Shown here: positions 1,668 to 55,450 of the stretch, in pieces
Layout of the letters: the number at the start of each line of letters is the position of its first letter
Numbering within the stretch: the stretch's first letter is position 1
Origin: Octopus sinensis
Taxonomy: Eukaryota
Assembly: GCF_006345805.1 (NCBI RefSeq)
Contig: NC_043005.1
Span: 14,880,001-14,944,000 of the forward strand
DNA length: 64,000 bases
Direction of reading: 5' to 3'
Notes under the pieces: model-generated
Told to the model about the DNA's origin: nothing
What the model saw: only the letters and a program-made list of their open reading frames with translations
Databases searched by the model: none
Position numbers and translations under genes: made by a program

Positions 1668-1805
1668 ATCAACAAAATCTTAAAGAAGCCTGAACAAGAA
1701 AGAAGTGCTGAGGAGTCTGTAATTCTTGAAACAAATCCAGATCTTGTTAAAAAAGCTGTAGAAAGAGCAAAAATTCGATGTAAATTAAAAAGACGAGCAT
1801 TAGAG
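1668..1805 (+). CDS. SIRT7: SIRT7 exon ([16 protein letters not shown]...KRRALE), 138 nt, phase 0-0
   Basis: ttcaaag acceptor and gtaac donor; 46 aa similar to human VSRILRKAAAERSAEE...KRRQEE. Confidence 0.9.
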
Positions 1806-4169
1806 GTAACAAACAAACAATTTAATCCCTAGCAATATCTGTTTTATCATAAAGCTTTTAACTTTTTTTAAAAAAACAGGTGATACATGCATAACTCTAA
1901 GCATTCTAATTGCAAGCTTTGGTTTAAATAATGATAATGAAATTATTGTATACAGTGCTCAGGTGCACCACAACTTGTCAGAGTATATGCAGTAATGTAA
2001 AAATGTCTGGAAAGCAAACAATGTATGAGTCAGATACATGCTTGTGTGTGTATGGAGGGGAGAAAATCAGGTGTAGTGTTGGCGAATCTCAGAAAGCATG
2101 GAAGTTTTGAAGGATGCAGTGCTCCGACAACTAACAACTGATACCGGCAGTTTGTTCCATGCTTCAGCAACTCTCAGCGTGAAAAAATGTTTCCTGAAGT
2201 CATGGGAGCTGTGCTGTTTTCTGACTTTGTAAATATGGTGTTAATAGGTGTTAGGTGGAAGATAGACATATCTCTCCCGGGATAGGATACCAGTCAATCA
2301 CAAGTAACATTCCCAGGTGATCTGGTGGTACTCATTTGTTCCTTGCAACTATTAAGGCAATGTAGAATACATTTCTCTACTTGGAGACACAAAATGACAT
2401 ACAGCAGTGGATTTGAACTGACTACCTATGTGTATGTTGGTCAATACCTTGTTTTTTTTTAGCCACAGATCAGGCCTAAGGGGAGAAATTTCTGATCAAA
2501 GGTATTTCAGTCAACTTTTGTTCAGACAGTTTATCTAGGACTACATTGTCCAATGTACCTGTCTGCTTTTGACGTGGTAAAGTGTGATTGAAAGTAGATT
2601 TAACTACTGTTTCTAGTAAACCAAGCAACCCTGGAGAGGTTTCCTCATGTCACTCAAACTGGAATGACCAGAATTCATCATCATCGTTTAACATCCATTT
2701 TCCATGCTAGCATGGGTTGGACGGTTTGACCAGGGTCTGGGAAGCCAAGAGGCTGCACCAGGCTCCAGTCTGATCTGGCTGTGTTTCTACAGCTGGATGC
2801 CCTTCTTAACGTCAACCACTCCGCGAGTGTAGTGGGTGCTTTTTACGTGCCACCGGCACAGGTGCCAGGGGAGTCTGGCATCAGCCATGATCGGTTGGTG
2901 CGTTTTATGTGCCACCGGCACAGAAGCCAGTCGAGGCAGCGCTGGCATCAGCCACGTTCGGATGGTGCTTTTTATGTGCCACCGGCACAGGTATCACAAC
3001 TACTATTTCCATTGATATTTGTTTCGAATAATCTGGACCCTTTGCTGAAGTAATTTTTCTCATAACAATTCAATAGTTTACTTTAACAGGATTTAACATT
3101 TATTGATTTTTAATTGTGACAACTTATGTGTAAGTATATCTATGTGATAATTGGTTAACTCACTTATTGAATTAGTTTCCTAGTATTCTAGATTTTATTT
3201 AACTTATTTGTTGACCCTTTTGTGACCATGTTTCTTATGAAATACACCTTACATGTGTTAATTTTGGCATAAGGCCATCAAGATCGGGGAGGGAATAAGT
3301 CAATTACATCAACCCCAGTACTCAACTGGTACTTATTTTATTGACCCCAGGAGGATGAAAGGTAAAGTCAACCACAGCGGAATTTGAACTCAGGCTGTAA
3401 AGATGGCTGAAATGCCGTAAAACATTTTGCCCAATGTGCTAATAATTCTGCCAGTTTGTCACCTTAATTTTGAAAGTAATAATGAATAACTAATTTATTC
3501 ATTAAAATGATGTTTGGAACATAAATTAATGTGAATTCTTGGTGCAAGGTTTTTTTTAAATTTAAATACAAAGGCTTTAAAATGAAAGTTTTATTTTCAA
3601 CACTGCTGAGGTTATCTGTCAAGGATGGTCTCAGACATGTTGGCACCAAAAGTGTTGACTATTGTTTATTCTGAATCGTTTGTTTCAGATTGAAGATTCT
3701 GCTGAAGTACTCAAACAGAAATGTGATCAACTTGCTGAAGCTATTAAGAAGTCAAAAGGTATCTGTGTCTATACTGGAGCAGGAATCAGTACAGTGAGTA
3801 GAGATTTTGTTATAGTTTATTTTTGTATTTTTAATCATATGCTTTACAATTTGTCTTTCGTGCACCAGCAATTATGTAGCTTCCATTACTGTCTCTCCTC
3901 CATTACTCCCCCAGCATTGTCGCACTTCCATCAATTCAGCCACATGTGCCAATCACTGCATACCCTCCATACTTACCTCCTTTCTCTTCTACTCATTTCT
4001 AGTTGGTCATAGTGTCTTGAATGTATGGAGACACTGCAGGGTTGAGAACCTCTTTAGTCTTCTCATGGACACGTCAACCTCTCTAGTGCTAGTGGTTACC
4101 TACTGTGAAGTACCTTCAGCAATTTTCGTCTCTAAAGGAAATTTGATAGGCAGGAACTGAAAGATGTTC

Positions 4170-4202
<33 letters not shown>

Positions 4203-7200
4203 GTATTATATAAATATATATATATATAATGAATCTTTAAATACATTTTGAATTTTTCTTTTCACTAGGCTGCTTCAATTCCTGACTATAGAGGACCAAA
4301 CGGTGTATGGACACTTCTCCAAAAGGGACAAGAATTAAAGTAAGCTAATTTGTATCTTCATGGATATTGGTTATTTGATGCTTCCACGAGTCCTGAGTAC
4401 TTTTCTCTCTACCACCAATTACAAAAACAAATATATGTTTGAAAAATTCTTTAAAATAATAGTTTCAGATTTTGTTTGGCACAAAGCCAGCAATTTTTGG
4501 GGAGAGACTAGTTGATTACATTGCTTCCAGTGATCAACTGATACTTAATTACTGACCCTGAAATGATGAAAGGCAAAGTTGACTTCAGCAAGATTTGAAC
4601 TCAGAATGTAAAAAGCACGAAAAAAATGTTGCTAAGCATTTTGTTCATTTTGTACTAGCGATTCTGCTAGCTCACCAATCCACAAAATAATTTATATTTT
4701 TAACAATTTCAAATGATGATTAAAAATATCATCATTGTCACAAAATTAACCTTAAAAATCATCCCAAATATTTGTTGTCAACTTTCATGTGGGCCTGACT
4801 ATGTGGTTAAAAAATTTGTTTCACAACCATATGGTTCTGGGTTTGATCCCATTGCATGGCACTTTGGTCGAGTTTTTCCGGCACGTAAAAAGCACCATCC
4901 GAATCGTGGCCGAAGCCAGTGCCGCCTCGACTGGCTTCCATGCCGGTTGCATGTAAAATGCACCCATCCGACCGTGGCCGTTGCCAGCCTCGCCTGGCAC
5001 CTGTGCAGGTGGCACGTAAAAAGCACCCACTACACTCACGGAGTGGTTGGCGTTAGGAAGGGCATCCAGCTGCAGAAACATTGCCAGATAAAACTGGAGC
5101 CTGGTGCAGCCTTCCGGCTTCCCAGATCGCCGGTCGAACCGTCCAACCCATGCTAGCATGGAGAACGGACGTTAAACGATGATGATGATGATGATGTAAT
5201 GAGTGGGATTTGTGGAAACTATGTGAAAGCCCTTTGTGTGTACGTGTATGTGTCTGTGTGTGAGTGTGGAGTGCAGATGTGGTGACATTTGAATATTATT
5301 CATTCAATCTATTTTCTACATTGAAGAATGTTTTTGCCTTAAATCAACAGGCCTTAACTGGGTTGTAACAAGTGTTGACTGAAATATTTCAAAATGTTTA
5401 ATTTTTAAAGCTATAAATTATTATTGGAACTGATTTGAGATAGGAATGACCAACAAGACCACCGACAGGACTTGGTTTGTAGGTGACCATGTTACTGACT
5501 GCAATACAGTGTCTGTCATTTTCTTTTCTTCTCAATAATAATGTAAATGTTTAATTTGTTATTTTTGTAGGCCTCAACAATTTACTGATGCAGAACCAAC
5601 CAAAACACACATGGGTCTGCTAACGCTTTACAAGCATGGCAAGGTAAGTTATTACTTGTAATTTACGTTGATGTAGTTAAAATGGCAAATTTCTGTTTTC
5701 TGTAAAACATTGCTTCGTTTTTTTCGTTTCCAATTCTATTTTTCTTTCTTTTTCTTTTGCTTCCTGTGAACTGCAGTTAAAACATGTTGTATCCCAGAAT
5801 TGCGATGGACTTCATCTCAGAAGTGGTCTCTCGAAAAGAATCTTATCTGAGGTTCACGGCAATATGTACTTAGAGGTGAGACTCTTGCAAGTTTTTTTAA
5901 GCTTTATTTTATCATTGTTTTATATCATCGTAAGGCAGCAAACTGGCAGAATTGTTAGCATGCCAGGCGAAATGCTTAGCTGTATTTCATCTGCTGCTAC
6001 ATTCTGAGTTCAAATTCTGCCGAGGTTGACTTTACCTTTCATCCTTTCAGAGTCAATAAATCAAGTACCACTTGAGTACTGGGGTCACTGTGATCAACTG
6101 TCCCTCTCCTCACAAAATCCAGGACTTGTGCTCATAGTCGAAAGGTTTATTTTATATCATCACATTTCGTGAACAATCTCATAATTAGTTACAGGTATCA
6201 ATCACTGGTTCACTGCATCCACATTGATGAAAGTGACAAGAAAATAATTGTACAACTCATGCAGAACAAATACCATCCTATAAATGTTTCACTGATGTAC
6301 ATTATAATAATAATAATAATAATAATGAAATTATTGTATACAGTCCTCAGGTGCACCACAACTTGTCAAAAGTGCATATAAAGCATATGTAGTAATGTAC
6401 TAGCTGACCCTGTGTGCCGGCAAAAATGACGGCTAATTGTAGTATTTTATATATAAATAAGGTACAAAACAAGATACTTAATAATCACACATACAAACAT
6501 TCACATACTTCTCTTGTACATGCACACACATATACACAGAGTTGAAATGCTGTTTGATTTTTCTTTTCAGTGTTGGACGTTCACCATCCCATTTCCACTG
6601 CACACATGTAACCCCCCCCCCACAAACATTCACACAGCTCTCTTTTATATACTTACACAGAGTTGAAATGCTGATTTTTTTTTCACCCCTTCCTTTCTCC
6701 ATTGCTATTACTTTCTCTCACCCTCTCTCAGTCTGGGCTATTATTCTCACTACTTCTCCTTCACTGAATTACTATTTTCTCTCCTCTCCTTTCACTTATA
6801 CTACTCTTTCTCCTGCTCTGTCCTACTCCTACTCTAATTTTGAACAAATATATATATATACACATACACAAATATATTAAAGCACTATGCTCATTATTAT
6901 ATTAGGAGATTGCTTTGGGTCAACCAAAGCCTTGTGGGTGAATTTTGCTTGATGGAAACTGAAAGAAATCCATCATTCATATATATCTATGTGTGAGTGT
7001 TTCTCCATACCTTGACATCAAGTAATATTTGTAAATGAGCATCACCATCATTCAAGCAATGTCCTTTGTTTCCAATCTTCTGTGTAAACATGTCTGACTC
7101 AGTAAATTTTGTTTGGTCCATAGACGCATGGAAAAGTGGACGTTAAAACAATGATGAGGATGATATATGTATTAGGATCTTCCACACAGTTTCCAAATGC

Positions 7201-10200
7201 CACTCACAAAGCATTGGTCAGTCCAAGGCTATGTTGAACAACACTACCCTAAGTGTCATACAGTGGAAGTGAACCCAGAACCATGTGATTGCAAACTTCT
7301 TAATTACACAGCTATGTCTGCACCATCTATCACCCCCCCCCCCATCTTTCTCTTTAGTCATCTAATATACTTCTGCTAACCTCTCCCAGTTTGCTGTCTA
7401 TATGTTCAGAGCTTGTATTCCACTCACAGTCACTGAAATAAATATAAGTTGTCTTCTTGAATCGCAGGTCACACCTGATTGAGTAGATCTGCGATCTTAA
7501 GTGTTCCTGCTATTACTATGCCTTTTTCTGCTTGGTATAATGTGTTCCAGCCTACATTATCCAAATGTTAGTATACTAACCACACTAATCATTTTTTTCA
7601 GAATAGTAAGAGTTTCTAGAAAGAGAAGCTACCCAACAGAAGTCCTGTCATAAGGGCATAAGTCCCAATAATAAGCTGAGGTTGATTCAGTCAACTGAAT
7701 ATTTTTCCTTAAAAGACAATTGACCCTGAGTCAAACAAAAATTGATACATGTGTTATATATCTCATGTAATACATATATAAACATTGTGGCACATAAAAA
7801 GCACCATCCGTTCGTGCCCGTTTGCCAGCTCTGTCTGGCACCTGTGTGGGTGGCATGTAAAACGCACCCACTACACTCACGGAGTGGTTGGCGTTAGGAA
7901 GGGCATCCAGCCGTAGAAACACTGCCAGATCTGACTAGGCCTGATGAAGCCTTCCGGCTTCACAGACCCCAGTTGAACTGTCCAACCCATGCTAGTATGG
8001 AAAACGGACACTAAACGATGATGATGATGATATCTAAATTGCGGGAGTGGAACAGGTAAAATCAAGACTACATATGTTGCCTAGCTTGCAGATCCTCTGA
8101 TATAATAATTACTTTGCTACTCAGTAGGCTGAGGATACCTTAATTATATGAAGGTTACATTGTCATTTGGGAATCCGATATATTATGTATATTATATTTA
8201 TAAAAAAATATTGGGTTGTCTGGAAAGTTTGTGCTGATTTATTGTAGCTTACCTTTCGAGTTATTTTAGAACATGGTTGAGTTCATAAAATAGGATTTGA
8301 CTACACCTCCATTTAGAGCACAGTTTAAGCTATCTTTTCATGGAAGAAGGTTTATGTTCCTATGACCTGTGTTAATTCTGTAACCCTTTAAAATGGAAGA
8401 TAAGAAAGTTCATTTTCAGTACTTGATGCTTTGGGAACCAGACAAAAATTGCTGCAGCTTGGTTGGGATGTGTTACCCCACCCTTCATATTCACCAGATA
8501 TTGCTCCTTCGGATTTCCACTTATTCAGGTCTCTGCAGAATAGTCTTAATGATAAAAATTTCAATTCCTTGGATGACGTAAAAAGATACCTTGATGAATT
8601 CTTTGCCATGAAACCACCTCATTTCTAGGAAGAGGGTATTTTCAAGTTAAAGGAAAGATGGAGACGCATTGTGTAACAAAATGGTTCATATTTGGTTGAT
8701 TGAAAATGTAATGGCAAGTATTTATTGACCTTTTTCTTTCCTTTAAAAATCGGCATGAACTTTCCGGACAACCCAATATATATATTATATACTTAATGCA
8801 CGCTGGGCAAAATGCTTTGCAGTATTTCATCTGTCTTTGTGTTCTGAGTTCAAATTCTGCCCAGGTCAACTTTGCCTTTCATCCTTTTGGAGTTGATAAA
8901 TTAAGTACCAGTTGCGTACTGGAGTCGATCTAATCGATTGGTCCTCTCCCCAAAAATTTCATTGCTTTTTATTGGTCCTCTCCCCCCAAATTTATTGTTT
9001 TCTCTCTTTTCATTTTTTTCCAGATGTGTTACAAATGTAAACCTTTTAAAGAATACCTGCGCCTGTTTGATGTCACCGAGAAGACAGGTGTACGCAGGCA
9101 TCATACATCCCGACGCTGTCACTTCTGTAAAAACCTTCTTAGTGACACTATTGTCCATTTTGGTGAGAAAGGGCGCCTGTGTTCTCCATACCGGTGGAAA
9201 GAGGCTGCAGCAGCAGCCAAAAACTGTGATGTTATTTTGTGCCTTGGAACCAGTTTGAAGGTTGTTGTAACTTATAGTTATTTTTTGTTTTTGTTGTCTA
9301 AGGATATGTTCTGTTTCAATGCTTACCATTTTTATAACAATAATAGTAATAACTAGCAGTATCGCCCAGCGTTGCTCGGGTTTGTAAGGAAAATAACTAT
9401 ATAAGCATTTTTAGAGATGTAAAGTATAATAGTCATCTCAATATGGCTAACCACAAAGGGGGGGGGGTCTTACTGTAGCTTTTTATGTTCTGAGATTTAA
9501 TAATAAATTTTTAGAGAGTTACTTCCCTTATATATGCCAAAAATGCATTAAAAATGGGAAAAATTGATGGTAAATTTTTTTTAAAATCGTAGACTCATCG
9601 TAGATGCGTGCTAATACCCAGAAGGGCTCGATATGAATCACGACTATAAGATACCCGGTTTTGGTTAAACTGCACTGCAAAATGTGGGAGTAGTTAGGAA
9701 TCTAAATCATAGGAGACAGACAGCACACAACCTCACTTTTATATATAAAGATAGGGCAGCGAGCTGACAGAAACATTAGTATGCTGGGCGAAATGCTTTG
9801 CAGTATTTCATCTGTCTTTATGTTCTGAGTTCAAATTCTTCCCAGGTCGACTTTGCCTTTCATCCTTTTGGAGTCAATAAATTAAATACCAGTTGCGTAC
9901 TGGAGTTGATCTAATCAATTGGTCCCCTCCCAAAAAATTTCGGGCCTTGTGCCTTGAGTAGAAAAGAATAATAGTAATAATAATGATAACATCATCATCA
10001 TCATCATAAAAAAAAAATTTACTTACTAAACATTTGAATAGCTACCACAAATGTTTAATCAACAAAACCCTTCATAGACATTTTTACCTCTAAAGACCAA
10101 TGTAAAACTGAAAAAAAAAAAATTCAGTAAACACCATTTTTAGAATATTTTCTATTTAACTCTTAAATAGTTTAAAAAGAAGAAAAAAATATTAAAACTA

Positions 10201-11664
10201 ATAAATGTAAAATTTTACAGTTTTTTTTTGCTTTTCCTAAATGTTCTTAGGTACTAAAGAAATACACTTGTCTATGGTGTATGGACAGAAAACCTTCAAA
10301 ACGACCCAAACTTTTTATTGTAAATTTACAATGGACACCAAAAGATGTCTGTGCAACTTTAAAGATCAATGGTGAGATATATTTCAACGTACTATGCTTT
10401 CTTTCAGAACAGAATTAGATAAACTTATAATGTAAAATGTGTATCCGTTATTTATGCAATATAAAAAAAAAATGTTAAAACTAAACAGCTTATCCACCTA
10501 CCTACTTACCTACCTACCCACCCACCATTTCTTTCATGTCATCAATGTCCACATGATACATACATGAATATAGTTTCAGTTTCACCTCCTCTCCCTATAA
10601 GTCATGTGGCTGGGGTTATGTAGCTATTTATATCGTATAAATAGTTTATGTTCATTGATATTTTATTTATTATATTTGTAAGTTATTGTTTTTTTCTTCT
10701 TTTTCTTAAAAAGGAAGATGTGATGATGTCATGGATCAAATAATGAAAAAATTAGGGTGGAAAATTACTGAATATTTAAGGTAATGTGTTTTATCATATT
10801 TCATTAGTTACATTCACATATATATATATCGTGCCAGTGGCACGTAAAAGCACTCACTACACTCTCGGAGTGGTTGGCGTTAGGAAGGTCATCCACCTGT
10901 AGAAACTCTGCCAGATCAGATTGGCGCCTGGTGCAGCCATCTGGTTGCCAGTCCTCAGTCAGATCGTCCAACCCATGCTAGCATGGAAAGCGGACGTTAA
11001 ATGATGATGATGATGATATATATATATATATATATGTTTCTTTACTACCCACAAGGGGCTAAACATAGAGGGGACAAACAAGAACAGACAAACGAATTTA
11101 AGTCGATTATATCGACCCCAGTGCATAACTGGTACTTAATTTATCGACCCCGAAAGGATGAAAGGCAAAGTCGACCTCGGCGGAATTTGAACTCGGAACA
11201 TAATGGTAGACGAAATACGGCTACGCATTTCGCCCGGCGTGCTAACGGTTCTGCCAGCTCGCCGCCTTAATATATATATACACATGCACACACACACATA
11301 CACACACACGTGCATGCATGTGTGTGTATATCATCATTTAACATCTGTTTTCCATGCTGGCATGGGTTGGATGGTTTGACTGAAAACTGGTAAGCCAGGG
11401 GAGCTGCACCAAGTTCTGATCTGATTTAGCAAGGTTTCTACAGCTGGATGCCCTTCCTAACATCAACCACTCTGAGAGTGTAGTGGGTGTTTTTTGCGTG
11501 CCACTGACACAGGTGCCATTGACTTGACACTGGCATTGGACACGACTACCGTCTCACTTGGCTTGATAGGTCTACACATACACTCACACACACATATATG
11601 CACACACACACACATATGCACACACACACACACACTCTTTCTCTCTCTCTCTCTCTCTCTCTCA

Positions 11665-12373: not shown

Positions 12374-13695
12374 TATACGACAGGCTTCTTTCAGTTTCCG
12401 TCTACCAAATCAACTCACAAGGCTTTGGTCGACCGAGGCTATAGTATAGCCCAAGGTGCCATGCAGTGGGACTGAACCCAGAACCATGTGGTTGGGAACG
12501 AAGCTTCTTACCACGCAGCCACTCCTGTGCCTATGTATGTATGTGTGTGTGTGTGTGTGTGTGTGTGATTGTAAGAGTAAAAGTACACACATACATAAAA
12601 TGCAGGCATGGTTTGGGGTTATGGAGATTGTTTCCCAACATCATGGTTTTGGGTTCAGTTCCACTGCATAACATTTTGAACAAGTCTCTTCTACTATAGC
12701 CTTGGGTCTAACCTGTGAATGGATTTGGTAGACAGAAATATATAAGATTATATATTTCTGAGTTCATATACTGGTGTGTGTGTGTATGTGTGTATAATGT
12801 ATGTGTATGTGTGTTTACGGTATATTTATATATACATATGTGTTTTCAATTATATTTTGCAACAGGGAAAAGGATCCTATGTTCCGTTTTGCTGTCCCTT
12901 TACGTGCCCATGAATACAAGAGTACCACTTCTAAACAACTTAAAGTGCCTGACTCCATGAAGGAAAAATTTTGTATAAAGTCCAAGAAATCGAATTCTGA
13001 ATCTATGCAGAGTAAGGAAACTGAACAATCATCTCCTGCCGTGATATCTTCCATTAAAACCGAAATCCAAAGCCAACATTCTTGCCAAGCACTATCATCT
13101 TTGCAAAGTTCATCTGAAAAGAATTTCCCACATGACAAACACCACCTACCCAACGCCTTAGACTCCAGTTATGAGAACACGAATTTAAAATTAACTTTGA
13201 AAAGCAATATGTGTAGTTGTAGGTTTGTTGACAGCAGTGAATGTACGCTATGTTTTCTTAAGAACTCTTGTGATAAAGACCATTCCTATTGCCGCCGGCG
13301 GCAAAGGAATTTTCCATGTTCCTTAAACACCGTACAGAAAAAGTCCCTCCCTTTGCCTTGGTGCTCAGTTGCAAATATCTTGATGGAGCATGATTATCTT
13401 GCTTGGAATCAGTTTCACACTCTTGTCGAAGCTGCTGGTTTTGTAGTCAGTCAACCCCCGGCATTGGCTGATTGCAAACCTACCGTGTGCCAAGACGAAC
13501 AATTAGCCAACAGTAAATGTAACGTGGACTATCGTCCTAATTTTGAATCTTTGCACAGCTCTAAATCATTACCAAAGTTTTGTAACACTAGTAGCAATAG
13601 CAGTAGTAGTAGTAGTATTTGTAGCAGTAGTGGTAGTAGTGAGAGTAATAGCAGCAACCAAACTAACGAATCTCAAAGAAATACGACTTCCAAAC

Positions 13696-13728
<33 letters not shown>

Positions 13729-13805
13729 TTACTACTACTACTCCTCGTTATTGTGTTAGTTGTTTTTATAACAAAGTGAAGTTCTCTAAGTTGTTAGCTC
13801 TGCAA

Positions 13806-13842
<37 letters not shown>

Positions 13843-14090
13843 TGGGTCATTCCAGTTCGAATAATGCAGAGTCTGGTGATCGTGTTTCAGCAGCCAATAG
13901 TGTTCATATCAAAACAGAATCTGCTCAACCGGTTGCAGACCTCTGCAAAGAAGAGGGGGAAGGTGAAGAAGTAGATGCTAGTTTTAAGTCTTCTTCGCAA
14001 GGTAAATTATACACTCAGTCTCGATCTCGTTCAATTCCAGGATGGTTTGGTAAAGGTCTCAGCATTCGCAAGAAAAGAAAACGATTTTGA
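1668..14090 (+). CDS. SIRT7: NAD-dependent deacetylase sirtuin-7, spliced CDS, 5'-incomplete: join(1668..1805,3689..3793,4269..4339,5571..5643,5777..5875,9024..9260,10251..10371,10714..10780,12866..14090)
   Basis: Nine GT-AG exons join in frame (2136 nt, 711 aa plus stop). Motifs seen: [37 protein letters not shown], catalytic EVHGN, Zn-binding CYKC and [31 protein letters not shown] and C-terminal GWFGKG..RKKRK. All match SIRT7 as recalled from the human protein. No first exon was found in 1-1667. Confidence 0.96.
1928..2236 (-). mobile_element. CR1-type LINE 3' end (ORF2 C-terminus plus 3' UTR with (ATT)n tail)
   Basis: Matches the 3' end of the longer copy at 52604-53340. Further copies at 6305-6395 (-), 16410-16660 (-), 25846-26185 (+) and 56650-56997 (+). 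Confidence 0.85.
2676..3020 (-). mobile_element. Family A repeat (RTE 3' UTR-derived: tandem hairpin units, GGTTGGCGTTAGGAAGGGCATCC domain, (GAT)n tail)
   Basis: More than 20 copies, e.g. 4878-5196 +, 7786-8031 +, 10832-11016 +, 11331-11560 -, 14794-14969 +, 15392-15537 +, 15975-16397 +, 33972-34175 -, 39345-39700 +, 49085-49442 +, 50296-50660 +, 55202-55402 -, 59298-59640 -, 62076-62375 +, 62498-62870 +, 63661-64000 -. Confidence 0.88.
3689..3793 (+). CDS. SIRT7: SIRT7 exon ([11 protein letters not shown]...VYTGAGIST), 105 nt
   Basis: tttcag acceptor, gtgagt donor; sirtuin GAGIS NAD-binding motif. Confidence 0.96.
4269..4339 (+). CDS. SIRT7: SIRT7 exon ([23 protein letters not shown]), 71 nt
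   Basis: cactag acceptor, gtaagc donor; PDYRG motif; not in the ORF track because it is short. Confidence 0.96.
4878..5196 (+). mobile_element. Family A / RTE 3' end copy
   Basis: Ends in GGACGTTAAACGATGATGATG; inverted relative to 2676-3020. Confidence 0.88.
5571..5643 (+). CDS. SIRT7: SIRT7 exon ([24 protein letters not shown]), 73 nt
   Basis: ttgtag acceptor, gtaagt donor; AEPTxTHM motif. Confidence 0.95.
5777..5875 (+). CDS. SIRT7: SIRT7 exon ([17 protein letters not shown]...EVHGNMYLE), 99 nt
   Basis: ctgcag acceptor, gtgaga donor; QNCDGLH and catalytic HG motifs. Confidence 0.96.
6398..6910 (+). mobile_element. Second HINE-like element
   Basis: 5' ACTAGCTGACCC, 3' microsatellite then ATTATTATATTAGGAGAT. 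Confidence 0.5.
8211..8776 (+). mobile_element. Internally deleted mariner element, 566 bp, 29-bp TIRs, TA TSD
   Basis: TIRs ttgggttgtctggaaagtttgtgctgatt / aatcggcatgaactttccggacaacccaa, TA on both sides. N-terminal [13 protein letters not shown] is fused to C-terminal [27 protein letters not shown]. Confidence 0.93.
9024..9260 (+). CDS. SIRT7: SIRT7 exon ([11 protein letters not shown]...ILCLGTSLK), 237 nt, zinc-binding module
   Basis: ttccag acceptor, gttgtt donor; two CxxC motifs, [15 protein letters not shown]. Confidence 0.96.
9352..9752 (+). mobile_element. HINE/DINE-1-like non-autonomous Helitron-type element
   Basis: 5' ACTAGCAGTATCGCCCAGCGTTGCTCGGG, (GACA)-type repeat near the 3' end, terminus CTTTTATATATAAAGAT. 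Confidence 0.65.
10251..10371 (+). CDS. SIRT7: SIRT7 exon ([41 protein letters not shown]), 121 nt
   Basis: tcttag acceptor, gtgaga donor; [10 protein letters not shown] motif. Confidence 0.95.
10714..10780 (+). CDS. SIRT7: SIRT7 exon ([22 protein letters not shown]), 67 nt
   Basis: Polypyrimidine tract then aaaag acceptor, gtaatg donor; CDDVM motif; phases 1-2 fit the neighbouring exons. Confidence 0.93.
11037..11268 (-). mobile_element. tRNA-derived SINE family C with Nin/Deu-like domain (GCCTTTCATCCTTTCGGGGTCGATAAATTAAGTACC)
   Basis: Head GGCGAGCTGGCAGAA..GAGTTCAAATTCC. Copies at about 3290-3465, 4470-4680, 5930-6140, 8790-8960, 9753-9968, 14975-15180, 18476-18670, 18730-18910, 18973-19155, 21480-21695, 24975-25150, 37757-37960, 38112-38337, 41020-41220 and 60385-60600. 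Confidence 0.85.
11870..12231. mobile_element. MITE of about 360 bp with 38-bp TIRs (37/38), next to (TA)n
   Basis: tataagagagttactgttaagtggttaactctagtgct (11870-11907) versus agcactagagttaaccacttaacggtaactctcttata (12194-12231); the TIR may extend about 15 bp further out. Confidence 0.85.
12866..14090 (+). CDS. SIRT7: SIRT7 terminal exon, 1225 nt ([16 protein letters not shown] ... long low-complexity insert ... [19 protein letters not shown])
   Basis: caacag acceptor in phase 2; continuous ORF (track 12801..14090); both ends resemble human DPIFSLATPLR and GGWFGRG..KRKK. Confidence 0.92.
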
Positions 14091-39921: not shown

Positions 39922-42900
39922 ATAAGTATGCACACCCATTTGCATATTATTGCATCAAACTGACTGAATGTTTGGAACAACTGTAAAATAATAGCTAGGA
40001 ATTTAGTTTTGCTTTGCTAAATATATTCTTTTCATGTTTTATATATAACATATATTGTAACTGATGTAAATAATAATGCCATATATATATATGTGTGTGT
40101 TTGACCAGCTTGTATTTTATTAAATACTTGAGCTAGAACCAACTTTTGAACCAACTTTTGTTCTGCAGAATTATTTTTATCTTGATTAGGAAGTTGGGTT
40201 TTAAGAATCTGGGAACTTCTGAGCATTAATCTGTTTCTCTATTGTATGCTATAATAGTGTTTTCTCACCCATTGAATGTCTGTGTGTGTGTGTGTGTGTG
40301 TGTGTCTCCATGCAGGATACTCTGTAAAGATGCAGGTGAGCAAGCAGAACTGTGGGATTGAGAAGGTCTTGTTAAGGTTGTGACAAACTCACCTGTGCTG
40401 GTGCCATGATAAAATGTACCTGGTGTAGTCTGTCAGGTAGTTGATGTGAGGACAGTCATTCCTACAATAGAATCCAACCCGAAACTGAAATATTTAGGAG
40501 AGTAGTATATCTGAGAACTCACTCAGACTGTGACAGTTCATCCAACCATCGAAAGTGGATGGAAAATGGTGATGATGATGATACGTACATACTCATATAT
40601 GAAGGTCTTCTGCTCAGTTTCTGTCTGTCAAATTTACTCACAAGGCATTTGTCAACCCAAGGTTGTGGTAGCAGAGACTAATCCTATAATCCTAGGTGCT
40701 GTTCAGTCATATTGAACCAAGAACCATATGGTTGTGAAGCAGGAAGATCTGTATGATGTCAGTATAGAAAAGTACATGTTAAATGACAATGATGACCTTT
40801 TAAGAAGGTTTTTTTCTTTATTTGATTGCTCTTAAATAATTATAATTGTTCTGTTTTTTCTTTTTCTCCTTTCATTTAGAGCTGGTTGGTTCTACTACTG
40901 ATTCCTCTGGGACCACTGAACATACATACCGTTCTGCTTCTCCAAGACTAATAAACCGAATTGAGACACAAAAGCCAACATCAAAAGGTTTACATTCACC
41001 TTAGTACCACTGTATAATATTGATTTCTAACATTGGCATAAGGTCACAAATTATGGGGTTGGATACAGTTGCTTAAATTGACCCCAGTACTTGATTGATG
41101 CTTGATACAGGGCCCGGAAAGCTGAAAAGTAATGGTGTTCATTGTAGGATTTGAACTCAGAACATAAAGGGCTATAACTATATACCATAAAGCCTTTCAT
41201 TACTGCATTAATGATTGCCCCAATCCCATGTATATAATAATGTCTTGATTATTTTACTTTTGATTTAATTAATGAATTATGTAGATTAAAAACAAATATG
41301 ATGGCTCTATGAATCATAGGACTAAGTGAAGCCAAATAAGGATTCTTTCCCCCTTGGAATTTCATCTTTCTAGTAAAAGCTCTTTGCCGATGATTCCCTC
41401 CTTTCAACACCAAATGAAAGAGCATGCTAAATGTCAACTGAATTAGCCTTACCAAGCTCTCCTCAGTTTAGTGTGGACTAAAGGTTTATGGGCTCTTTCT
41501 ATCCTTGGACTCATTACAAAATATGAAATATATTTAAAAAGAGATAATTTACTGTTTAAATAGATTGTTACAAGAAAAGCACTGATAGTATGGCAGAATC
41601 AAAAGTTCATATGTTGTGAAGGGAGGTGAGTTCTGATATTTCAGGGTGGGTTCTCTCTTTTAAAGAAATGAAAAGCGTGCTAGAAGAATGAATGAAGTTC
41701 AGGACTTTCCAACTCACCTTTTTTCTTCAAATAAGTGTTCTACCTGAAATATCAGAGCTCACCCTCCTCACAGAACACCAACATCACTAATTTCCATGCA
41801 TTTTGACTTTTCTTTCTTCACTGGACTAAAAACGCTTAGTTTCAATTTTCTACATTCTGAGTTCAGTTTTTGCCAGGTTTGATTTTTGCCTTTCAGGAGC
41901 TAGTTAGATAACTATTGGTAATGTAGTAGTTTGGTTCAGTCAGCCATATCTAATCGTCTACAAGTTTGTGAACGTGTTGTGATAAATCATAAGTTAGGCT
42001 GCTTTTGTTGATATTGCATTAGGAAGGGCATCCAGCCATAGAAACCATGCCAATGCAGACAATAGAACCAGTGCAGCTCTCAAGCTTGCCAGATCCAGTC
42101 AAACCATCCAATCTATGCCAGCATGGAAAATAGATATTAAATAATGATAATGATGATGATGAATTAGAGTGGACATATATTTTGTTCTTGTTCATTTGAT
42201 TATTATTTCGGTTTCTTTTTCCTAACTTGTGATTATTTTATTGTTAACAACAAATGAAAGAAAGAATAATCTGATTTTTCACAGAATTTGAAATTTGATA
42301 TATAAGGCTGATTTTCTCTATGAATCATCTGCGGGCTGTTGCTTATGTTCAGCTTCCATGATGTTAAGGATATGAGAAGCAAACCCCCATAGTTGGGGCA
42401 TAAATCTATTAGTGCAGGTGTCTTTGCTCTTGGGTGAAATTGAATCCAACAATGAAAAACACTGCAATACTCTTCACTTTACAGTACTGCCATTGCTTAC
42501 AGCAGTGACTTGTTTGTCTTTAGATCCAGACAGACATTTAGAAATGATGTTAATCAGGTAGAATTAATTCAAAGATTGTATGGAAATAAATATTTAAGTC
42601 AATCGTTGTGTGGTTAAATGTTCTATTCTAAATCCATTTATCTATTCCAATATGACAAAATGTATGCAATTTTCATGATGTTCCTAATTTGACTTTTCTT
42701 TAATTAAATCTATTGATCTTGTCTTTTTATTGTTTCACAGCTGAACCACTTCGTTATGTAGGCCACCCAATTAAAACTAGTGTGCCGTTCAATAGGATGT
42801 TGTCTACCTCAACACCTGATCCTGAAAAATGCTTAACAACCGCCAACTGGACCGACTGTGATGCAATTAATGATGGACTTGCTTCTAATACTCAAAGCAA

Positions 42901-45900
42901 GCCATTGCTACCCGTGAGACAGAAATCAAAGAAACTGACGCAAACTAATAAAGCACGTGTGACGTCTGTAACTGCCAAGCAATGCAAAACTGACCAGATC
43001 CTTAGAAAACAAAAATCTCCTACAAACATCACAAATAATGCAATTCAACAGAAGAAAAGAACTCATTCTGAAGTAGTAGAAAATCCCCAAACATCTTTGG
43101 GAATTAGAGTTTCTTCTTCCAGTCCATCTTATGGAAATGCTTACAGTTTCTCTGTTCACCAAGTTAATAAAATGTCACCCAAGCTGGATACTGCAAACAA
43201 CCAATCCGCATTTGACCCTGTTGTACCATCATCTAAACATGAGTGGAAGGTCACTGCAAACACTTCTTCAAATGCCACAAAGGTTTCAAATTCTGTAAAT
43301 CAATGCATTACATCTTCAAATGCTCAGAAACCCGTTTTAGAAACTATTCCTTTAGTTGTCCCATTAATTTCAACAGAATCAGATGCACCAAATTTGGATT
43401 CAAGGCAAGTTCCTTCATGTCCTAAAGAACAACCAACTTATTACCCACCTAATTTGCTCAACTATAAACTTCCAGATTATCCTGCCAAATCTACAAATAC
43501 TGCTGAAACACAACACCAAGTTCCAATTCAAGATCCCTTTCAGCTGATTTCAGAACGTCCCATATTTTTAGATAAAACTGTTCAAACAAGCCAGTCAAAA
43601 GAAGAATTTTTTACAGACACAATAAAAACCAAACGACAATCATCAGCTCCTGTTTCAACATCAAATCATCAAATCACATCACCAGTTTCTAGCCATTTTT
43701 TCACTCCTATAAACTCATCTCAGGGAAGTATGACAAATGTACGAGTATCTTTTGAAGAGCCTGTTCGTGACAACAATGTACCTGGCTATTCTGCACAACT
43801 TAATCAACCCAAAACTGTTCCTTCTTGTTCTAATAACTTAATTTCCGGTAATTCAAATCCTGCTGAAAAGTCTTTGAAAGGATTTCAGGCAAATAATAGG
43901 AATGGTTTTAATGATAATGCAAGTCCACCAGAATATACTTTAGGTACAGCCACAAAAACCCATCAGCCTATGCCAGGAATAAACTGTAAAGAAAATCCTT
44001 ATACTTATGGGTGTTCAAGTAATGGCTATGACATTCATCTCCAGTGGCAAAGTGTAGAAGCCTTAGCTGGAGCCAAAACTCTTAAGTTTATAATCAATGA
44101 ATTAAAAGAAACCTGTAAATCTACAAGTAAGTATGTATTTGTTTTTACTTCTGTGAAATTTTACTCCTAAAATCGTTGTTTAGCCCAGGTCAGCTCTGAT
44201 TGGGCATATTATATGATCAAAGGCATTTCATTAGTAATTACTCCCATTCATTGCATATCTAGGATTACATTGTCCAGTGTATCCTTAGTGGCATTTGAGC
44301 TTAGAGCATATCATCATCATTGTTTAACGTCCATTTTCCATGCTAGCATGGGTTGGACGGTTCAACCGGGATCTGGGAAGCCAAGAGGCTGCACCAGGCT
44401 CCAGTCTGATCTGGCAGTGTTTCTACAGCTGGATGCCCTTCCTAACGACAACCACTCCATGAGTGTAGTGGGTGCTTTTTACGTGCCACCGGCACAGAAG
44501 TCAGCCAAGGCAGTGCTGGCATCGGCCACATTCGGATGGTACTTTTTACATGCCACCGGCACGGGCATCACAACTACAATTTCCATTTGATTTTTATTTT
44601 GATGTTGATGTACTTGACTCAATAAGTCCCCTCAAGAACAGCTGGTTGCCCTACGATTTTCCATAATGATATGTAATTAAAATATGTAAATCATAGTACA
44701 GCGCTCTATTGCTCACTATGAAATAATTGTTTATATTTATTTATCATAAAGCACTAAGTTACTTAACAAGCCAACAAAGGAACCACTATGTAGTTATCCA
44801 GCCTGCTTTAAATAATAGGCAAATCACACTAACCATCTTAAAGAATGGACAATGTTGTGTTAGGTACATTGAATATAAAACATGATGGCTATGGCTGGAA
44901 TGCTTTTTGATTCTGGGTGTTTTGGATCAGGACTGATCTGGGCTAAATCTCACTGTCTTAAGCCAATGAGTGATGAGAGTGTCATAAAAAAAAAAGCCCC
45001 ACAAGTTATTTCAGTTTAATGATATTTAAACTTTTTTTCCTTATGAGCATTGATAAACTAAGAACCAGTAATACATTGGGGTCTATTCAATTGACTTTAC
45101 CACTCTTTTTTTACAAGTTGACTTTGAGCTTAAGGAAAACTGCATGTGGACACACACACACACATACACGGGTGAGCTGAAAAGTTCATTGGCTAAGAAG
45201 GAGTAATGTTAGAGCTGTGAAATCTTGCATGCATTAATTTCAATTCTTATTCATTAACAGTTGCATTGTTTCTTTCCAGGTAAACTGACATCAGACTGTT
45301 CAAAGAAGACTCCAAATGTAACTAGTAGCAACTTCTCTTGAAAATGGACGAAATTTTATCTCTATATATTTGATATTTGGTATTTTAATGGTTCCTTATT
45401 GGACTGTGGCTACGATGGGTTTTAAGTCAATTGTATCAATACTTGTTTGGTACTTATATTATTGATTTTGGAAGTAGGAAAACCAAAGGTGAACTGGATG
45501 GGATTTGAACTCTATTTTAATGTTTAATTATAATTCTGTTTTTTTTTTTTATTAAAATGTTTAGATCACCGTGAAATTATTCGAATGGTGAATCAGTTAG
45601 AAGACCTTGTAAATACATTGCCTCAGCTTCAAGACACCTTTGACCTTCAGACTGAATTTTGTTTAGCTTTACAGCCATTACGAACAGAAAATAACCGATT
45701 GCACAAGTAAGTTTGATTTACAATTTCTACTTGAGGAGACCTATTGAGTCAAGTTCATCAAAATAAAAATCAAATGGAAATTGTAGTTGTGATACCCGTG
45801 CCGGTGGCACGTAAAAAGCACCATCCGAACGTGGCCGATGCCAGTGCCACCTTAGCTGGCTTCTGTGCCGGTGGCATGTAAAAAGCACCAACCGATCGTG

Positions 45901-48818
45901 GCCATTGACAGCCTCATCTGGCCCCTGTGCTGGTGGCACATAAAAAGCACCCACTACACTCATGGAGTGGTTGGCGTTAGGAAGGACATCCAACTGTAGA
46001 AACACTGCCAGATCAGACTGGAGCCGGGGGCAGCCTCGTGGCTTCCCAGACCCCCGTCGAACCGTCCAACTCATTCTAGCATGGAAAACGGACGTTAAAC
46101 GATGATGATATACAAAAGCTCTCTCTCTCTTTTACTTGTTTCAGCCATTTGACTGCGGCCATGCTGGAGCACTGCCTTTAGTCGAGCAAATTGACCCCGG
46201 GACTTATTCTTTGTAAGCCCAGTACTTATTCTATCGGTCTCTTTTGCTGAACTGCTAAGTGACGGGGACATAAACACACCAGCATCGGTTGTCAAGCAAT
46301 GCTAGGGGGACAAACATGCACACAAACATACACGCACACATATATATATATATACATATATACATATATACGACGGGCTTCTTTCAGTTTCCGTCTACCA
46401 AATCCACTCACAAGGCTTTGGTTGGCCTGAGGCTATAGTAGAAGACACTTGCCCAGGGTGCCACGCAGTGGGACTGAACCCGGAATCATGTGGTTGGCAA
46501 GCAAGCTACTTACCACACAGCTACTCCTGTTGTGAAATCACCAAAAAGTTTCATTTTTGTGTAATAAATGGGCAAATCAAAAACTCTATGTATTCTTGTT
46601 TGTGTATTTTATTAAAACAAAAGCAGAGGTTGAACACTATCATCATTTTTTGACATAGTCTCCTTGTTTTTGATGCACTTCCAGTTGTCCACAAACTTGC
46701 TTTTCCTGTCAGTGAAAGTTTCCAGCTGGTCGTGCAGCCATTTATGCACTGCCTCCTGCACTTCTTCTGAAGAAATTTGATGACCTTGTAAAGGACGTTT
46801 AAGCCATCAGAAGAGATGATAGACAGATGGGGCGAGGTCTGGATTGTATGCAGGGTGTTCCAGTGACTCAAAAAAACATTTTTCAGTGGTTTCAATGGTG
46901 TGGCTAGCTATATGTAGGCATGTATTTCCATACAACAATAACACTTACTTTGAGAATAGACTTCAGTATTTGGTACAGGTAGCTGGTTTCAGTTTGTTGG
47001 CCAGAATTTCCCTGTGGCCTACATTTTTCAGGTAATGTTGCAGTATAGGCCTTTTTGTGTCCCCCAAATCTGTTAGCATCATTTTTTTTTTTTTGTCAAG
47101 GTTGAGTCTTGAATTACTTTTATGCTGGTGATTCTGGGTTGAGCTTGTTGAATCTATATGTCAGTGGTGGAAGTGGATGGATGTCCTGCTCCCTCTTCAT
47201 GCTTCACACGTGTCCAACCATTTTAAAACTTTTTGATCCACTCACACACACTTCTTGAAGGTGGTCGTTAAACAATGATAATGATATATAATGTGTTTGT
47301 GTTTGCTTATGCCTGTGATTACTTATACAAAAGACCAGCAAATGATGGTGTTGTCAGTCCTGTCAACTGGTCTCCTCATGGCTTTGAAGCCATGATGAGT
47401 AAGTTGTCCCTTACTTGAAAAACAGATGAGGGTTGGTGAAAGAAAGGGCATCCAACTGTAAAACTATGTATCAAAATAACATTTGTCCAGTCCATGATAG
47501 TCATATTGGAAACGTTTGATCATTGGTCTACTGACTCAGAATTGAGCTAAGATTAACTTTTTTGTTACCATATTTATTTTCAGAATCTCTGTGTTTCTTT
47601 TAATTACTTTAAATATAACAAAGAATTTAGTCAAATAACCTAGTTATTCAGCTAGTGTTAGGTACCTAAATTGTGACTAAGGTTTGGTGGAAGATTTTAA
47701 TTTAAAACTTATGAAAACAAAACATTTGTACTACAGAACCAGAGGCGGTTTCAGCCGGGTTGGTAATGAAAGGGTTAAACATCCATCACAAAGTAACTGT
47801 CCTTACTGAGTGAATTGTACATCACCATGGCATCTATTTAGAACTATAACAACTGAGCCATCAGTTTTCTAAGAGTCTTTGATAAATTTCTCAGTACTGC
47901 TCCTTTGATAAAATGCAAACTGTCCACTTGTTAATTAGTGGACTAATGCCTTATCTACTTGGTCAGCTACAATGTTTAGAGATAAATAACTTGGTAATAT
48001 TCAAATGTATTTGTCTTGCTTTGAAATTGGGTCCCATGTGGGTGTTTACAGGGGACTTGGATGAGGATTGAGTTACTGGTTTCATTGTTACTTAACAAGT
48101 CATTAAGATTCATTTACTTCTCTGACTCAAAATAGCAACCATAAATAGCAGATGACGGCTTATTAAAATGTAAATACGTGCTTACTCTTTTACTTGTTTC
48201 AGTCATTTGACTGTGGCCATGCTGAAGCACCGCCTTTTAGTCGAGCAAATCGACCTCAGGACTTATTCTTTGTAAGCCTAGTACTTATTCTATTGGTCTC
48301 TTAAGCCGAACCGCTAAGTTATGGGGGACGTAAACACACCAGCATCGGTTGTCAAGCGATGTTGGGGGGACAAACGCTGATGCACAAACATATACACACA
48401 GTACCATGGCCAATTTGTTAATCTCACAGACCAAAAGTGAATCTGATGTTAGTAAAGTGACCTTATTAGGTAATGTGAGGGAAGCTATATCAACCGTTGG
48501 TACACATTTCTTAAGTAATGACATGCAGGATGCTCATGAATGCTTGAACCAAGTCCTTGACTGTCTGAAAGAAGAAGGGGTCAAGTTGGCCACAAGTACT
48601 CCTACATCTAATAATTCCAGTTCCGATGATGATGACGACCCTAACTGCAGAGATACTTTCATTAACCCCACAGTTCAGAACTTCGAATTTGATATCAATC
48701 GCTCTATTACCTGTAAACGGTAAAAAGATACATCCTTAATTTTGACAAATGTATTTGAAACCATGTTTCCTGTCTCTTCTCTCTCTCTCTCTTTCTGTCT
48801 CTGTCTCTTCTCTCTCTT

Positions 48819-48853
<35 letters not shown>

Positions 48854-49442
48854 ATATATATATGTAACAAGGATAACCAGAGGTAATGCAGTACGATTGT
48901 TTTATGCAACTCTATGGAGTTGCATGAAACGATCGTACTGCATTACCTCTGGATAATATCCTTGTTGCTTATTTTGATTTTAATCACCTTACTTTGAAAT
49001 TGTATGGATAATACCATACTAAATTCTGGTGCCTTAAATTAAGTACCATATTCATCTGAATCTCTCTCTCTCCCTATATATATATCTGAACGTGGCCGTT
49101 GCCAGTGCCACCCTGATTGGCTTCCGTACCGGTGGCACGTAAAAAGCACCATCCGATCGTGGCCGTTTGCCAGCCTCGCCTGGCCTCCATGCCAGTGGCA
49201 CGTAAAAAGTACCATCCGACCGTGGCCATTTACCAGGCTTGTCTGGCACCTGTGCAGGTGGCACGTAAAAAGCACCCACTACACTCATGGAGTGGTTGGC
49301 GTTAGGAAGGGCATCCAGCCGTAGAGACATTGCCAGATCAGACTGGGCCTGGTGCAGCCTTCTGGCTTCCCAGACCCCAGTTGAACCGTCCAACCCATGC
49401 TAGCATGGAAAGCGGACGCTAAACGATGATGATGATGATGAT

Positions 49443-55205: not shown

Positions 55206-55401
55206 TCATCATCATCATCATCGTCGTTTAACGTCCGTTCTCCATGCTAGCATGGGTTGGACGGTTCGACCAGGGTTCTGGGAAGCCAGAAGGCTGCACC
55301 AGGCTCCAGTCTAATTTGGCAATGTTTCTACAGCTGGATGCCCTTCCTAACGCCAACCACTCCGTGAGTGTAGTGGGTGCTTTTTACGTGCCACCTGCAC
55401 A

Positions 55402-55448
<47 letters not shown>

Positions 55449-55450
<2 letters not shown>

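Follow-up and report, generated by a model that had tools for sequence, protein, structure and literature searches.

SIRT7 is the least understood of the nuclear sirtuins, and its targeting to promoters is known through a few vertebrate partners only. HCF-1 is a hub for histone methyltransferases, acetyltransferases, deacetylases, a deubiquitinase and OGT. A 64,000-nucleotide stretch of the Octopus sinensis genome (RefSeq assembly GCF_006345805.1, contig NC_043005.1, positions 14,880,001 to 14,944,000; called the window throughout) raises the question of whether the two might be linked directly. The window contains a SIRT7 gene, and the product of its last exon contains two tetrapeptides, DHSY (motif 1) and EHDY (motif 2), that look like HCF-1-binding motifs (HBMs). 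A reading of the DNA letters alone (the sequence-only reading) had noticed both and proposed that this deacetylase docks on HCF-1 through them. Recognition of HBMs by HCF proteins is kept from worms and flies to humans (PMC2082077).

Our best reading is that EHDY would be an HBM-type short linear motif, ancestral in protostome SIRT7, and that cephalopods have added a second copy. We put the probability that at least one of the two motifs is a functional HCF-1 dock at about 0.6. That the block around EHDY is a functional conserved element of some kind seems to us highly probable. The sequence-only reading had relied on how close together the two matches are. We found that closeness is not the strong argument; conservation is.

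Both tetrapeptides are part of SIRT7

We found that the two tetrapeptides are in the reading frame of a SIRT7 gene. The gene is on the + strand of the window, with eight upstream coding exons followed by a last exon of 1225 nt (coordinates in Table 1). Exons were placed by tblastn with human SIRT7 as the query; the human sequence served as a probe only. Every exon border has AG/GT, and the joined coding sequence is in frame (711 codons). We looked for exon 1 within the window and did not find it; exon 1 and the start codon are upstream of the window. Exons 2-9 (1668-10780) code for the N-terminal helix and the Sir2 catalytic core, including RRCHFCKN, the catalytic His and the zinc-binding cysteines.

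The product shares 93% identity with P0003 of O. bimaculoides, in which Pfam SIR2 is found with E = 1.2e-25, and 78% identity with a 'sirtuin-7-like' protein of Argonauta hians. Most of the top database matches that carry a name from their source are called sirtuin-7 or Sirt7, and they come from molluscs, arthropods and vertebrates. The start of the last exon resembles human SIRT7 DPIFSLATPLRAGEE and its end resembles human GGWFGRGCTKRTKRKK. This end holds the SIRT7-specific GWFGKG and basic motif; GW[FY]G[KR]G was found in nearly all SIRT7 orthologues scanned. The octopus tail is approximately 370 amino acids (aa) long, compared to approximately 35 aa for the human equivalent. Both tetrapeptides share the frame of the 407-codon last exon, with the SIRT7 catalytic exons upstream, and thus lie inside the SIRT7 insert, as the sequence-only reading had stated. 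A Pfam search of the tail found no domain.

An artefact would be one reason to dismiss the motifs: the insert could be a retained intron, or the gene model could be mis-joined, so that the motifs are never part of a SIRT7 protein. The O. vulgaris annotation points that way. Its entry P0002, a 239-aa 'hypothetical predicted protein', begins at the Met of MEHDY (window position 13383 onward), and this gene model seems to divide the last exon of SIRT7, with its start within the context of motif 2. Several results argue against an artefact, and we consider its probability close to negligible. The last exon belongs to a 429-codon open frame, and approximately 370 codons stay open in AT-rich DNA before the frame closes with the conserved SIRT7 C-terminal motif. 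The tail region is contained in the annotated O. bimaculoides and Argonauta proteins. Homologous tails are also found uninterrupted on contigs of 2.2-3.6 kb from sequencing runs, P0005 (670 aa) and P0006 (593 aa). Spliced transcripts look that way, which supports translation of the tail. The sequencing-run collection (Logan) lists P0005 in 45 of its blocks. Finally, long tails are the rule in mollusc SIRT7.

Two matches are improbable from composition

Translation bore out the positions of DHSY and EHDY, which are 36 codons apart, start to start. Both have the HBM core: Asp or Glu, then His, any residue, and Tyr. From the composition of the last-exon product, 0.025 matches to [DE]HxY are expected. 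In 200,000 shuffles of this product, the probability of at least one match was 0.025, that of at least two was 2.4e-4, and that of two within 36 aa was 4.5e-5, all uncorrected for the many (hundreds of) motif classes open to a reader. The sequence-only reading had judged two matches unlikely by chance, and on composition alone they are. These shuffle statistics alone are suggestive, not decisive.

The same reading had described the insert as otherwise low in complexity. It is not uniformly so. Both motifs are in sequence of ordinary complexity, upstream of the codon repeats, and no part of the tail is better conserved than the region that holds them. Farther downstream, the runs of Ser, Thr and Asp are coding trinucleotide microsatellites whose lengths differ among octopus species (compared with P0001, P0002 and P0003); the Thr and Asp runs are longer in the window than in O. 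bimaculoides.

Conservation within cephalopods

A database search with the tail alone returned two octopus sequences only. The tail is too diverged for direct search, and orthologues were therefore collected via the catalytic core. We aligned five cephalopod tails, including those of Octopus, Argonauta, and P0005 and P0006 (squid-like transcripts A and B, respectively). The catalytic cores of P0005 and P0006 are 87% identical to each other, 72-76% identical to those of octopods and at most 65% identical to those of other molluscs, from which we infer that both are decapodiform-like cephalopod sequences.

Motif 2 is the more strongly conserved. Its H, D and Y and the L that follows are invariant in the five sequences, and of all 12-residue stretches of the cephalopod tail, the one that starts at its His has the most invariant columns. 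Transcript B has DHDY at this position. Invariant columns make up 29 of the 346 in the alignment, and motif 1 contributes three of them (D, H and S). Octopus, Argonauta and transcript A all read DKDHSY at this place, and transcript B reads TDHSM. Within the two islands around the motifs, octopus and P0005 are 56% identical, compared to 22% elsewhere in the tail. The spacing between the motifs varies among cephalopods (29, 36 and 39 residues), and two separate linear motifs therefore fit better than one rigid domain. Conservation across cephalopod SIRT7, the test to which the sequence-only reading had pointed, is thus clear for EHDY and moderate for DHSY, which is kept in octopods and in one of the two squid-like transcripts.

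Other parts of the tail were also inspected. The surroundings of motif 1 are rich in Cys, and we rejected a zinc-finger reading of them: only C118 is invariant in the five cephalopod sequences. Another conserved island (13749-13787) is not an HBM. It is identical in Octopus, has one substitution (V to M) in Argonauta, and contains one Cys that is invariant in the squid-like transcripts (C..C.C[DN][KQ]V).

Conservation in molluscs and arthropods

We scanned 121 SIRT7 homologues for [DE]HxY. The N-terminal and catalytic parts of these homologues contained no match. Mollusc SIRT7 tails are all long (230-790 aa) and cannot be aligned with one another, yet [DE]HxY was found in the tail in 24 of 27 lophotrochozoan genera, including a chiton, gastropods, bivalves, cephalopods and the brachiopod Lingula, compared to 0.41 expected. 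Conservation in other molluscs is thus above background, as docking had been taken to imply. Each motif-bearing lophotrochozoan tail has one match, except that cephalopods and Patella have two.

An unbiased scan gave the same answer. The counts covered every 3-mer, every 4-mer and every pattern that fixes three of four consecutive residues. DH.Y was the top gapped pattern (24 sequences versus 0.41 expected, z = 37), DHCY and DHSY were the leading 4-mers, and no other pattern came close. The consensus in SIRT7 tails is [VI]-x-x-[DE]-H-[CSND]-Y.

Some arthropod SIRT7 tails have the motif too: those of the scorpion Centruroides, the tick Ornithodoros, the copepods Tigriopus and Lepeophtheirus, the thrips Megalurothrips and the orthopteran Anabrus. 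It also occurs in several further transcripts. The thrips (P0128) and Orthoptera (P0217/P0254), two distant insect orders, share [LF]-Q-[LI]-E-H-N-Y-S-K; this form is very near the human SETD1A and THAP5 motifs. From molluscs to arthropods, the orthologue of motif 2 is the only alignable element of the tail.

A long tail might carry such a short motif by chance. We rejected this idea. Twenty-six tails (12,907 aa, several of them 900-1700 aa long) had no motif, and they contained zero matches to [DE]HxY, [NQ]HxY or [DE]HxxY; the motif is therefore not a by-product of tail length. A search of the motif-less lineages for [DE]Hx[FW] found one DHEF, in an amphipod, and otherwise none. The motif-less tails are those of vertebrates, amphioxus, a hemichordate, echinoderms and the molluscs Dreissena, Mya and Gigantopelta, and, among arthropods, those of Limulus, Strigamia, Hymenoptera, Diptera, a damselfly, hemipterans, a lobster and amphipods.

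Some of the bivalve tails have features of their own. Dreissena (P0030) and Mya (P0034), both motif-less, have in common a long Gln/Glu/Lys-rich insertion in the tail that looks helical or coiled-coil, and share a block C-x-F-L-K-N-Y-G-V-x-K-[KR]-K-C-Q-N-C-Q. Unionids (P0007, P0008) have a related block, C-P-A-C-L-F-L-R-N-Y-G-I-Q-K-R-S-C-S-V-C, upstream of the motif.

Based on alignment with bivalve VLKDHCYLNKDQMQKL, we conclude that octopus EHDY is the orthologue of an ancient SIRT7 tail motif of protostomes. DHSY is a cephalopod-specific addition and is not equivalent to it. In the simplest history, the ancient motif would have arisen once, ahead of the protostome radiation, and then been lost repeatedly.

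Could the tetrapeptides nevertheless be functionless, present by chance in a freely drifting tail and selected in hindsight? The pattern is short, and scanning many motif classes will yield some matches. Human [DE]HxY peptides are for the most part non-binders. One of the squid-like transcripts has a degenerate motif 1 (DHSM), and this motif has no counterpart outside cephalopods. The shuffles, the 24 of 27 lophotrochozoan tails and the absence of any match from 26 other tails stand against chance, as does constraint on positions beyond the core (H-4, x and Y+1; see below). For motif 1, DKDHSY is identical between octopods and transcript A, in a tail otherwise approximately 22% identical. We regard chance as a very improbable explanation overall, and for motif 2 it is already contradicted.

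Residues around the motif resemble those preferred by HCF-1

In a 2026 display assay of all 347 [DE]HxY peptides from human disordered regions against the HCF-1 Kelch domain, 66 bound (doi 10.64898/2026.03.19.712392, preprint). The mutational scan in the same preprint defined preferences at positions counted from the His and the Tyr. A hydrophobic residue was favoured four residues before the His (H-4), and Val or Ile was required there in one background. A small x was preferred. Y+1 was uncharged, and some contexts also disfavoured Leu, Gln and Trp there; Pro at Y+2 was strongly disfavoured in all backgrounds tested. Glu at H-1 tightened the constraints. The E2F1 HBM was improved by L+1A (doi 10.64898/2026.03.19.712392).

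We anchored 35 SIRT7 instances on the motif and scored positions that had not been used to select them. Of the 35 residues at H-4, 32 were I, V, L or M, and 27 were Ile or Val, for which the background is 0.097 (binomial 4.7e-21, a nominal value since the sequences are related). At x, 30 of the 35 instances had C, S, D or N, and Y+1 was charged in none. These preferences fit the HCF-1 determinants from the mutational scan and add independent support for an HBM.

A crude log-odds position-specific scoring matrix (PSSM) was made from Table S1 of the preprint (64 distinct human binders and 52 sampled non-binders, human Kelch domain only). Its leave-one-out area under the curve was 0.93, on a small training set. 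Median scores were 4.6 for SIRT7 motifs, 4.3 for human binders, -3.0 for human non-binders and 0.6 for random tail flanks. With this small, human-only training set, octopus motif 1 scored 8.1, the 80th percentile of human binders, and motif 2 scored 2.1, the 27th percentile of binders and the 94th of sampled non-binders. Human binders with a near-identical context include ZNF639 (IFSDHCYS), PSMD7 (FLDHDYL), THAP2 (VLLEHSYA), THAP5 (VLQIEHSYC), N4BP2 (IFKDHNYS) and KANSL3 (VFLDHSYAK).

Conservation and flanking residues thus lend partial support to the docking proposed in the sequence-only reading. The two motifs are not equivalent, one being ancient and the other a cephalopod novelty.

Weighing a direct link to HCF-1

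Several observations weigh against HCF-1 docking. Approximately one in five human [DE]HxY peptides binds HCF-1, and the tetrapeptide alone therefore proves little. The Tyr of motif 1 is lost in transcript B (DHSM), and its H-4 is not clearly hydrophobic (Cys in octopods, Asn in transcript A). Motif 2 pairs Glu at H-1 with Leu at Y+1, a combination that is mediocre in human assays. The human peptide nearest to the bivalve form, MEIOSIN VSLDHCYL, was a weak hit only, and the human VWA5B2 peptide with DHDYLP did not bind (doi 10.64898/2026.03.19.712392). Motif 2 of the squid-like transcripts is this same DHDYLP, with the disfavoured Pro at Y+2; P0005 and P0006 nevertheless agree strictly over the block, which hints at a constraint other than or beyond HCF-1. 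Downstream of the motif, cephalopods and bivalves share YLxxxQ[MF]xxL (YLxxxQMxxL in bivalves), which an HBM does not need, and the block may thus be composite or suit a different partner. Motif 2 also appears to be in a weakly structured island and not in plain disorder, according to a low-confidence AlphaFold2 model. Finally, the motif has been lost in Diptera, Hymenoptera, decapods, amphipods and some bivalves, and these repeated losses indicate that it is dispensable and not essential.

The AlphaFold2 model was made for P0003 with a 41-sequence alignment, and its mean predicted local distance difference test score (pLDDT) was 61. The pLDDT was below 50 across nearly the whole tail and approximately 30 in the segment of motif 1, which is fully disordered in the model. 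Residues 511-540 of P0003 form an island of pLDDT 54-68, in which short helices (512-517 and 524-533) flank the EHDY turn.

These features would also suit a conserved block that is functional but is not an HCF-1 dock, its likeness to [DE]HxY being a coincidence. Such a block might be a helix-turn-helix module or a segment that folds upon binding to the catalytic domain, a nucleic acid or a chromatin protein; it might also be phosphorylated on its Tyr or bind a metal through His/Cys. The two short helices, the downstream YLxxxQ[MF]xxL and the V/I at H-7 kept in cephalopods and bivalves, and the Pro retained in squid-like DHDYLP, which the human HCF-1 pocket disfavours, are all consistent with this view, and x is Cys, beside the invariant His, in 12 of 35 lineages. 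However, across phyla only the features of an extended HBM persist: a hydrophobic H-4, an acidic H-1, the His, a small x, the Tyr and an uncharged Y+1. The residues of the downstream helix are not kept in gastropods, the brachiopod or arthropods. Cys is not required as a ligand, since S, N, D and A also occur at x. There is no Pfam domain, and the contexts are near-identical to those of validated human binders. We consider a function of the block apart from HCF-1 unlikely, though well above chance or artefact.

How might docking on HCF-1 work? The Asp/Glu, His and Tyr anchors of one or both motifs would enter the pocket of the Kelch beta-propeller of the HCF orthologue, and for motif 2 the Ile at H-4 would be inserted as well. 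Docking would tether the SIRT7 deacetylase to HCF-1 assemblies. SIRT7 might then be delivered to promoters occupied by HCF-1, or its Ser/Thr-rich tail might be offered to HCF-1-bound OGT for O-GlcNAcylation, or both. The Ser/Thr runs of the octopus tail could conceivably serve as O-GlcNAc acceptor sites. Vertebrate SIRT7, with its short tail and no motif, would be without the direct link. The analysis establishes the gene, its frame, the two motifs, their conservation and flank preferences, and the predicted disorder. We infer HCF-1 binding and all of its downstream effects, which might include H3K18 deacetylation at HCF-1 sites and ties to OGT, MLL or Sin3. The prediction of a direct link between SIRT7 and HCF-1, which vertebrate SIRT7 would be without, is a credible one.

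The delivery of SIRT7 to promoters meets a further difficulty. The Kelch pocket takes one motif at once, so HCF-1 bound by SIRT7 cannot hold a DNA-bound factor there, and SIRT7 riding to promoters would therefore need more than one HCF-1 molecule or other contacts. It is at least as plausible that HCF-1 would present SIRT7 to OGT as that SIRT7 docks on promoter-bound HCF-1.

The motifs might thus dock on HCF-1 mainly so that OGT can O-GlcNAcylate the tail or core of SIRT7 and control its stability or localization. HCF-1 recruits OGT to proteins that bind its Kelch domain and promotes O-GlcNAcylation of many of them. The octopus tail has long Ser/Thr runs approximately 200-350 nt downstream of the motifs. 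O-GlcNAcylation and stabilization of SIRT7 have reportedly been described in a 2022 paper, to judge by its title. The single Kelch pocket, which cannot hold a DNA-bound factor and SIRT7 together, is also consistent with an adaptor for OGT. However, the homopolymer runs show little conservation, even from one octopus species to another, and the chromatin enzymes that carry HBMs (SETD1A, KMT2A/B, KANSL3 and PHF8) are viewed as recruited effectors. A main role in presenting SIRT7 to OGT would share its predicted binding step with HCF-1 docking in general, and we place it on the unlikely side of possible.

Docking through a C-terminal HBM may have been an ancestral coupling of protostome SIRT7 to promoter-bound HCF-1/OGT, reinforced in cephalopods, and lost and replaced by indirect tethering through transcription factors elsewhere. 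The lineages that lost it would be deuterostomes and several insect and crustacean lineages, with the long tail or independently of it. We offer this fuller history tentatively, at less than even odds.

Other features of the window

Positions of the features are given in Table 1. The 485-codon open frame is Ser/Thr/Pro/Gln-rich and has no Pfam match. The exon-like frame farther downstream has a weak match to ubiquitin carboxyl-terminal hydrolases (UCH/USP), and the two are probably parts of a neighbouring USP-type gene on the same strand. Remains of retroelements are also present. A 187-codon frame with no Pfam match is adjacent to a reverse-transcriptase fragment. A repeat that resembles a short interspersed element (SINE) is present in numerous copies on both strands. 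Simple repeats of the (TG/CA)n and (TA)n type are abundant in introns and flanks.

Table 1. Features of the 64,000-nucleotide window, numbered from its first nucleotide
Feature	Position	Strand	Description
SIRT7 coding exons 2-5	1668-1805, 3689-3793, 4269-4339, 5571-5643	+	tblastn, AG/GT borders
SIRT7 coding exons 6-9	5777-5875, 9024-9260, 10251-10371, 10714-10780	+	tblastn, AG/GT borders
SIRT7 last exon	12866-14090	+	407 codons and stop, after canonical AG; codes for the long C-terminal tail
Motif 1, DHSY	13278-13289	+	H-4 = Cys, x = Ser, Y+1 = Cys, Y+2 = Arg
Conserved island around motif 2	13368-13448	+	V-x-x-[IV]-L-[MI]-[ED]-HDYL-x3-Q-[FY]-x-TL-x3-AG-x2-V
Motif 2, EHDY	13386-13397 (core); 13377-13400 (extended, ILMEHDYL)	+	H-4 = Ile (13377-13379), x = Asp, Y+1 = Leu, Y+2 = Ala
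Homopolymer-rich tail stretch	13589-13839	+	Ser-rich 13589-13640, Thr 13696-13742, Asp 13806-13839; Tandem Repeats Finder
Other conserved tail island	13749-13787	+	Not an HBM
Conserved SIRT7 C-terminal motif	14034-14087	+	Basic end, resembling a nuclear localization signal; matches human GGWFGRGCTKRTKRKK
485-codon open frame	42713-44170	+	No Pfam match
Exon-like frame	48349-48723	+	Contains QDAHECLNQVLD; UCH/USP, E = 7e-5, just under curated cut-off
187-codon frame	52754-53317	-	No Pfam match
Reverse-transcriptase fragment	58412-58705	-	Pfam RVT_1, E = 5e-5
SINE-like repeat, sites include	2604-3050, 44213-44590, 45727-46074, 49052-49393, 55244-55540, 62042-62329	both	Translation contains LQSDLA[VM]

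Comparison with known systems

A literature search found no paper tying SIRT7 to an HBM or to direct HCF-1 binding, no sirtuin reported with an HBM, and no sirtuin among the known motif-bearing clients of HCF-1. The one preprint in which both terms occur mentions SIRT7 solely in the title of a reference on O-GlcNAcylation. If docking is the ancestral coupling of protostome SIRT7, this enzyme would join SET1/MLL, NSL, BAP1 and Sin3 as a chromatin enzyme organized by HCF-1. With docking, an NAD-dependent deacetylase would become part of the HCF-1/OGT nutrient-sensing node in most invertebrate phyla. Docking would also explain the long SIRT7 tails that invertebrates have and vertebrates are without. 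The motif has been retained for more than half a billion years in a tail that otherwise drifts freely, a clean example of a linear motif found by its conservation within unalignable disorder. Should binding fail, the block would still mark a conserved function of invertebrate SIRT7.

The octopus protein and vertebrate SIRT7, a class IV sirtuin and nucleolar/nuclear deacetylase of H3K18ac, have orthologous cores (35-79% identity to human per exon). Common to both are the HGN catalytic His motif, two CxxC pairs, and a C-terminal region that starts with DPxF..PL and ends with GWFG[KR]G and a basic run. In contrast, the vertebrate protein has [DE]HxY nowhere and a tail of only ~35 aa, compared to two motifs in ~370 aa in octopus. 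Vertebrate SIRT7 reaches promoters via partners such as ELK4, MYC and NRF1. If docking was ancestral, the connection of vertebrate SIRT7 with MYC and NRF1 would be a remnant of the old wiring.

There is a precedent for a pathway that joins a sirtuin and HCF. In C. elegans, SIR-2.1/SIRT1 and HCF-1 act jointly on DAF-16/FOXO. That case differs from ours: the sirtuin is of the SIRT1 type, and its link to HCF-1 is genetic or runs through 14-3-3 and DAF-16, and is not known to involve an HBM in the sirtuin.

The closest likeness is to established HBMs. Those of SETD1A, KMT2A/B, KANSL3, THAP proteins, E2F1/4 and PGC-1 have the same anchors and extended preferences as the SIRT7 motif. Octopus ILMEHDYL resembles THAP2 VLLEHSYA; insect [LF]Q[LI]EHNYSK resembles SETD1A ILLEHNYA and THAP5 VLQIEHSYC; and gastropod VSLDHSYC and ITFDHSYAK resemble KANSL3 VFLDHSYAK. 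The cephalopod form is unlike known HBMs in its Leu at Y+1, its Pro at Y+2 in the squid-like transcripts, and the extra conserved residues of its island. Like the chromatin enzymes that carry HBMs, SIRT7 is a nuclear enzyme that modifies chromatin, and its motif is in a long region that is not globular. Based on these comparisons we suggest that the finding is not a new kind of system but a candidate addition to a known class of motif, in a known family of enzymes.

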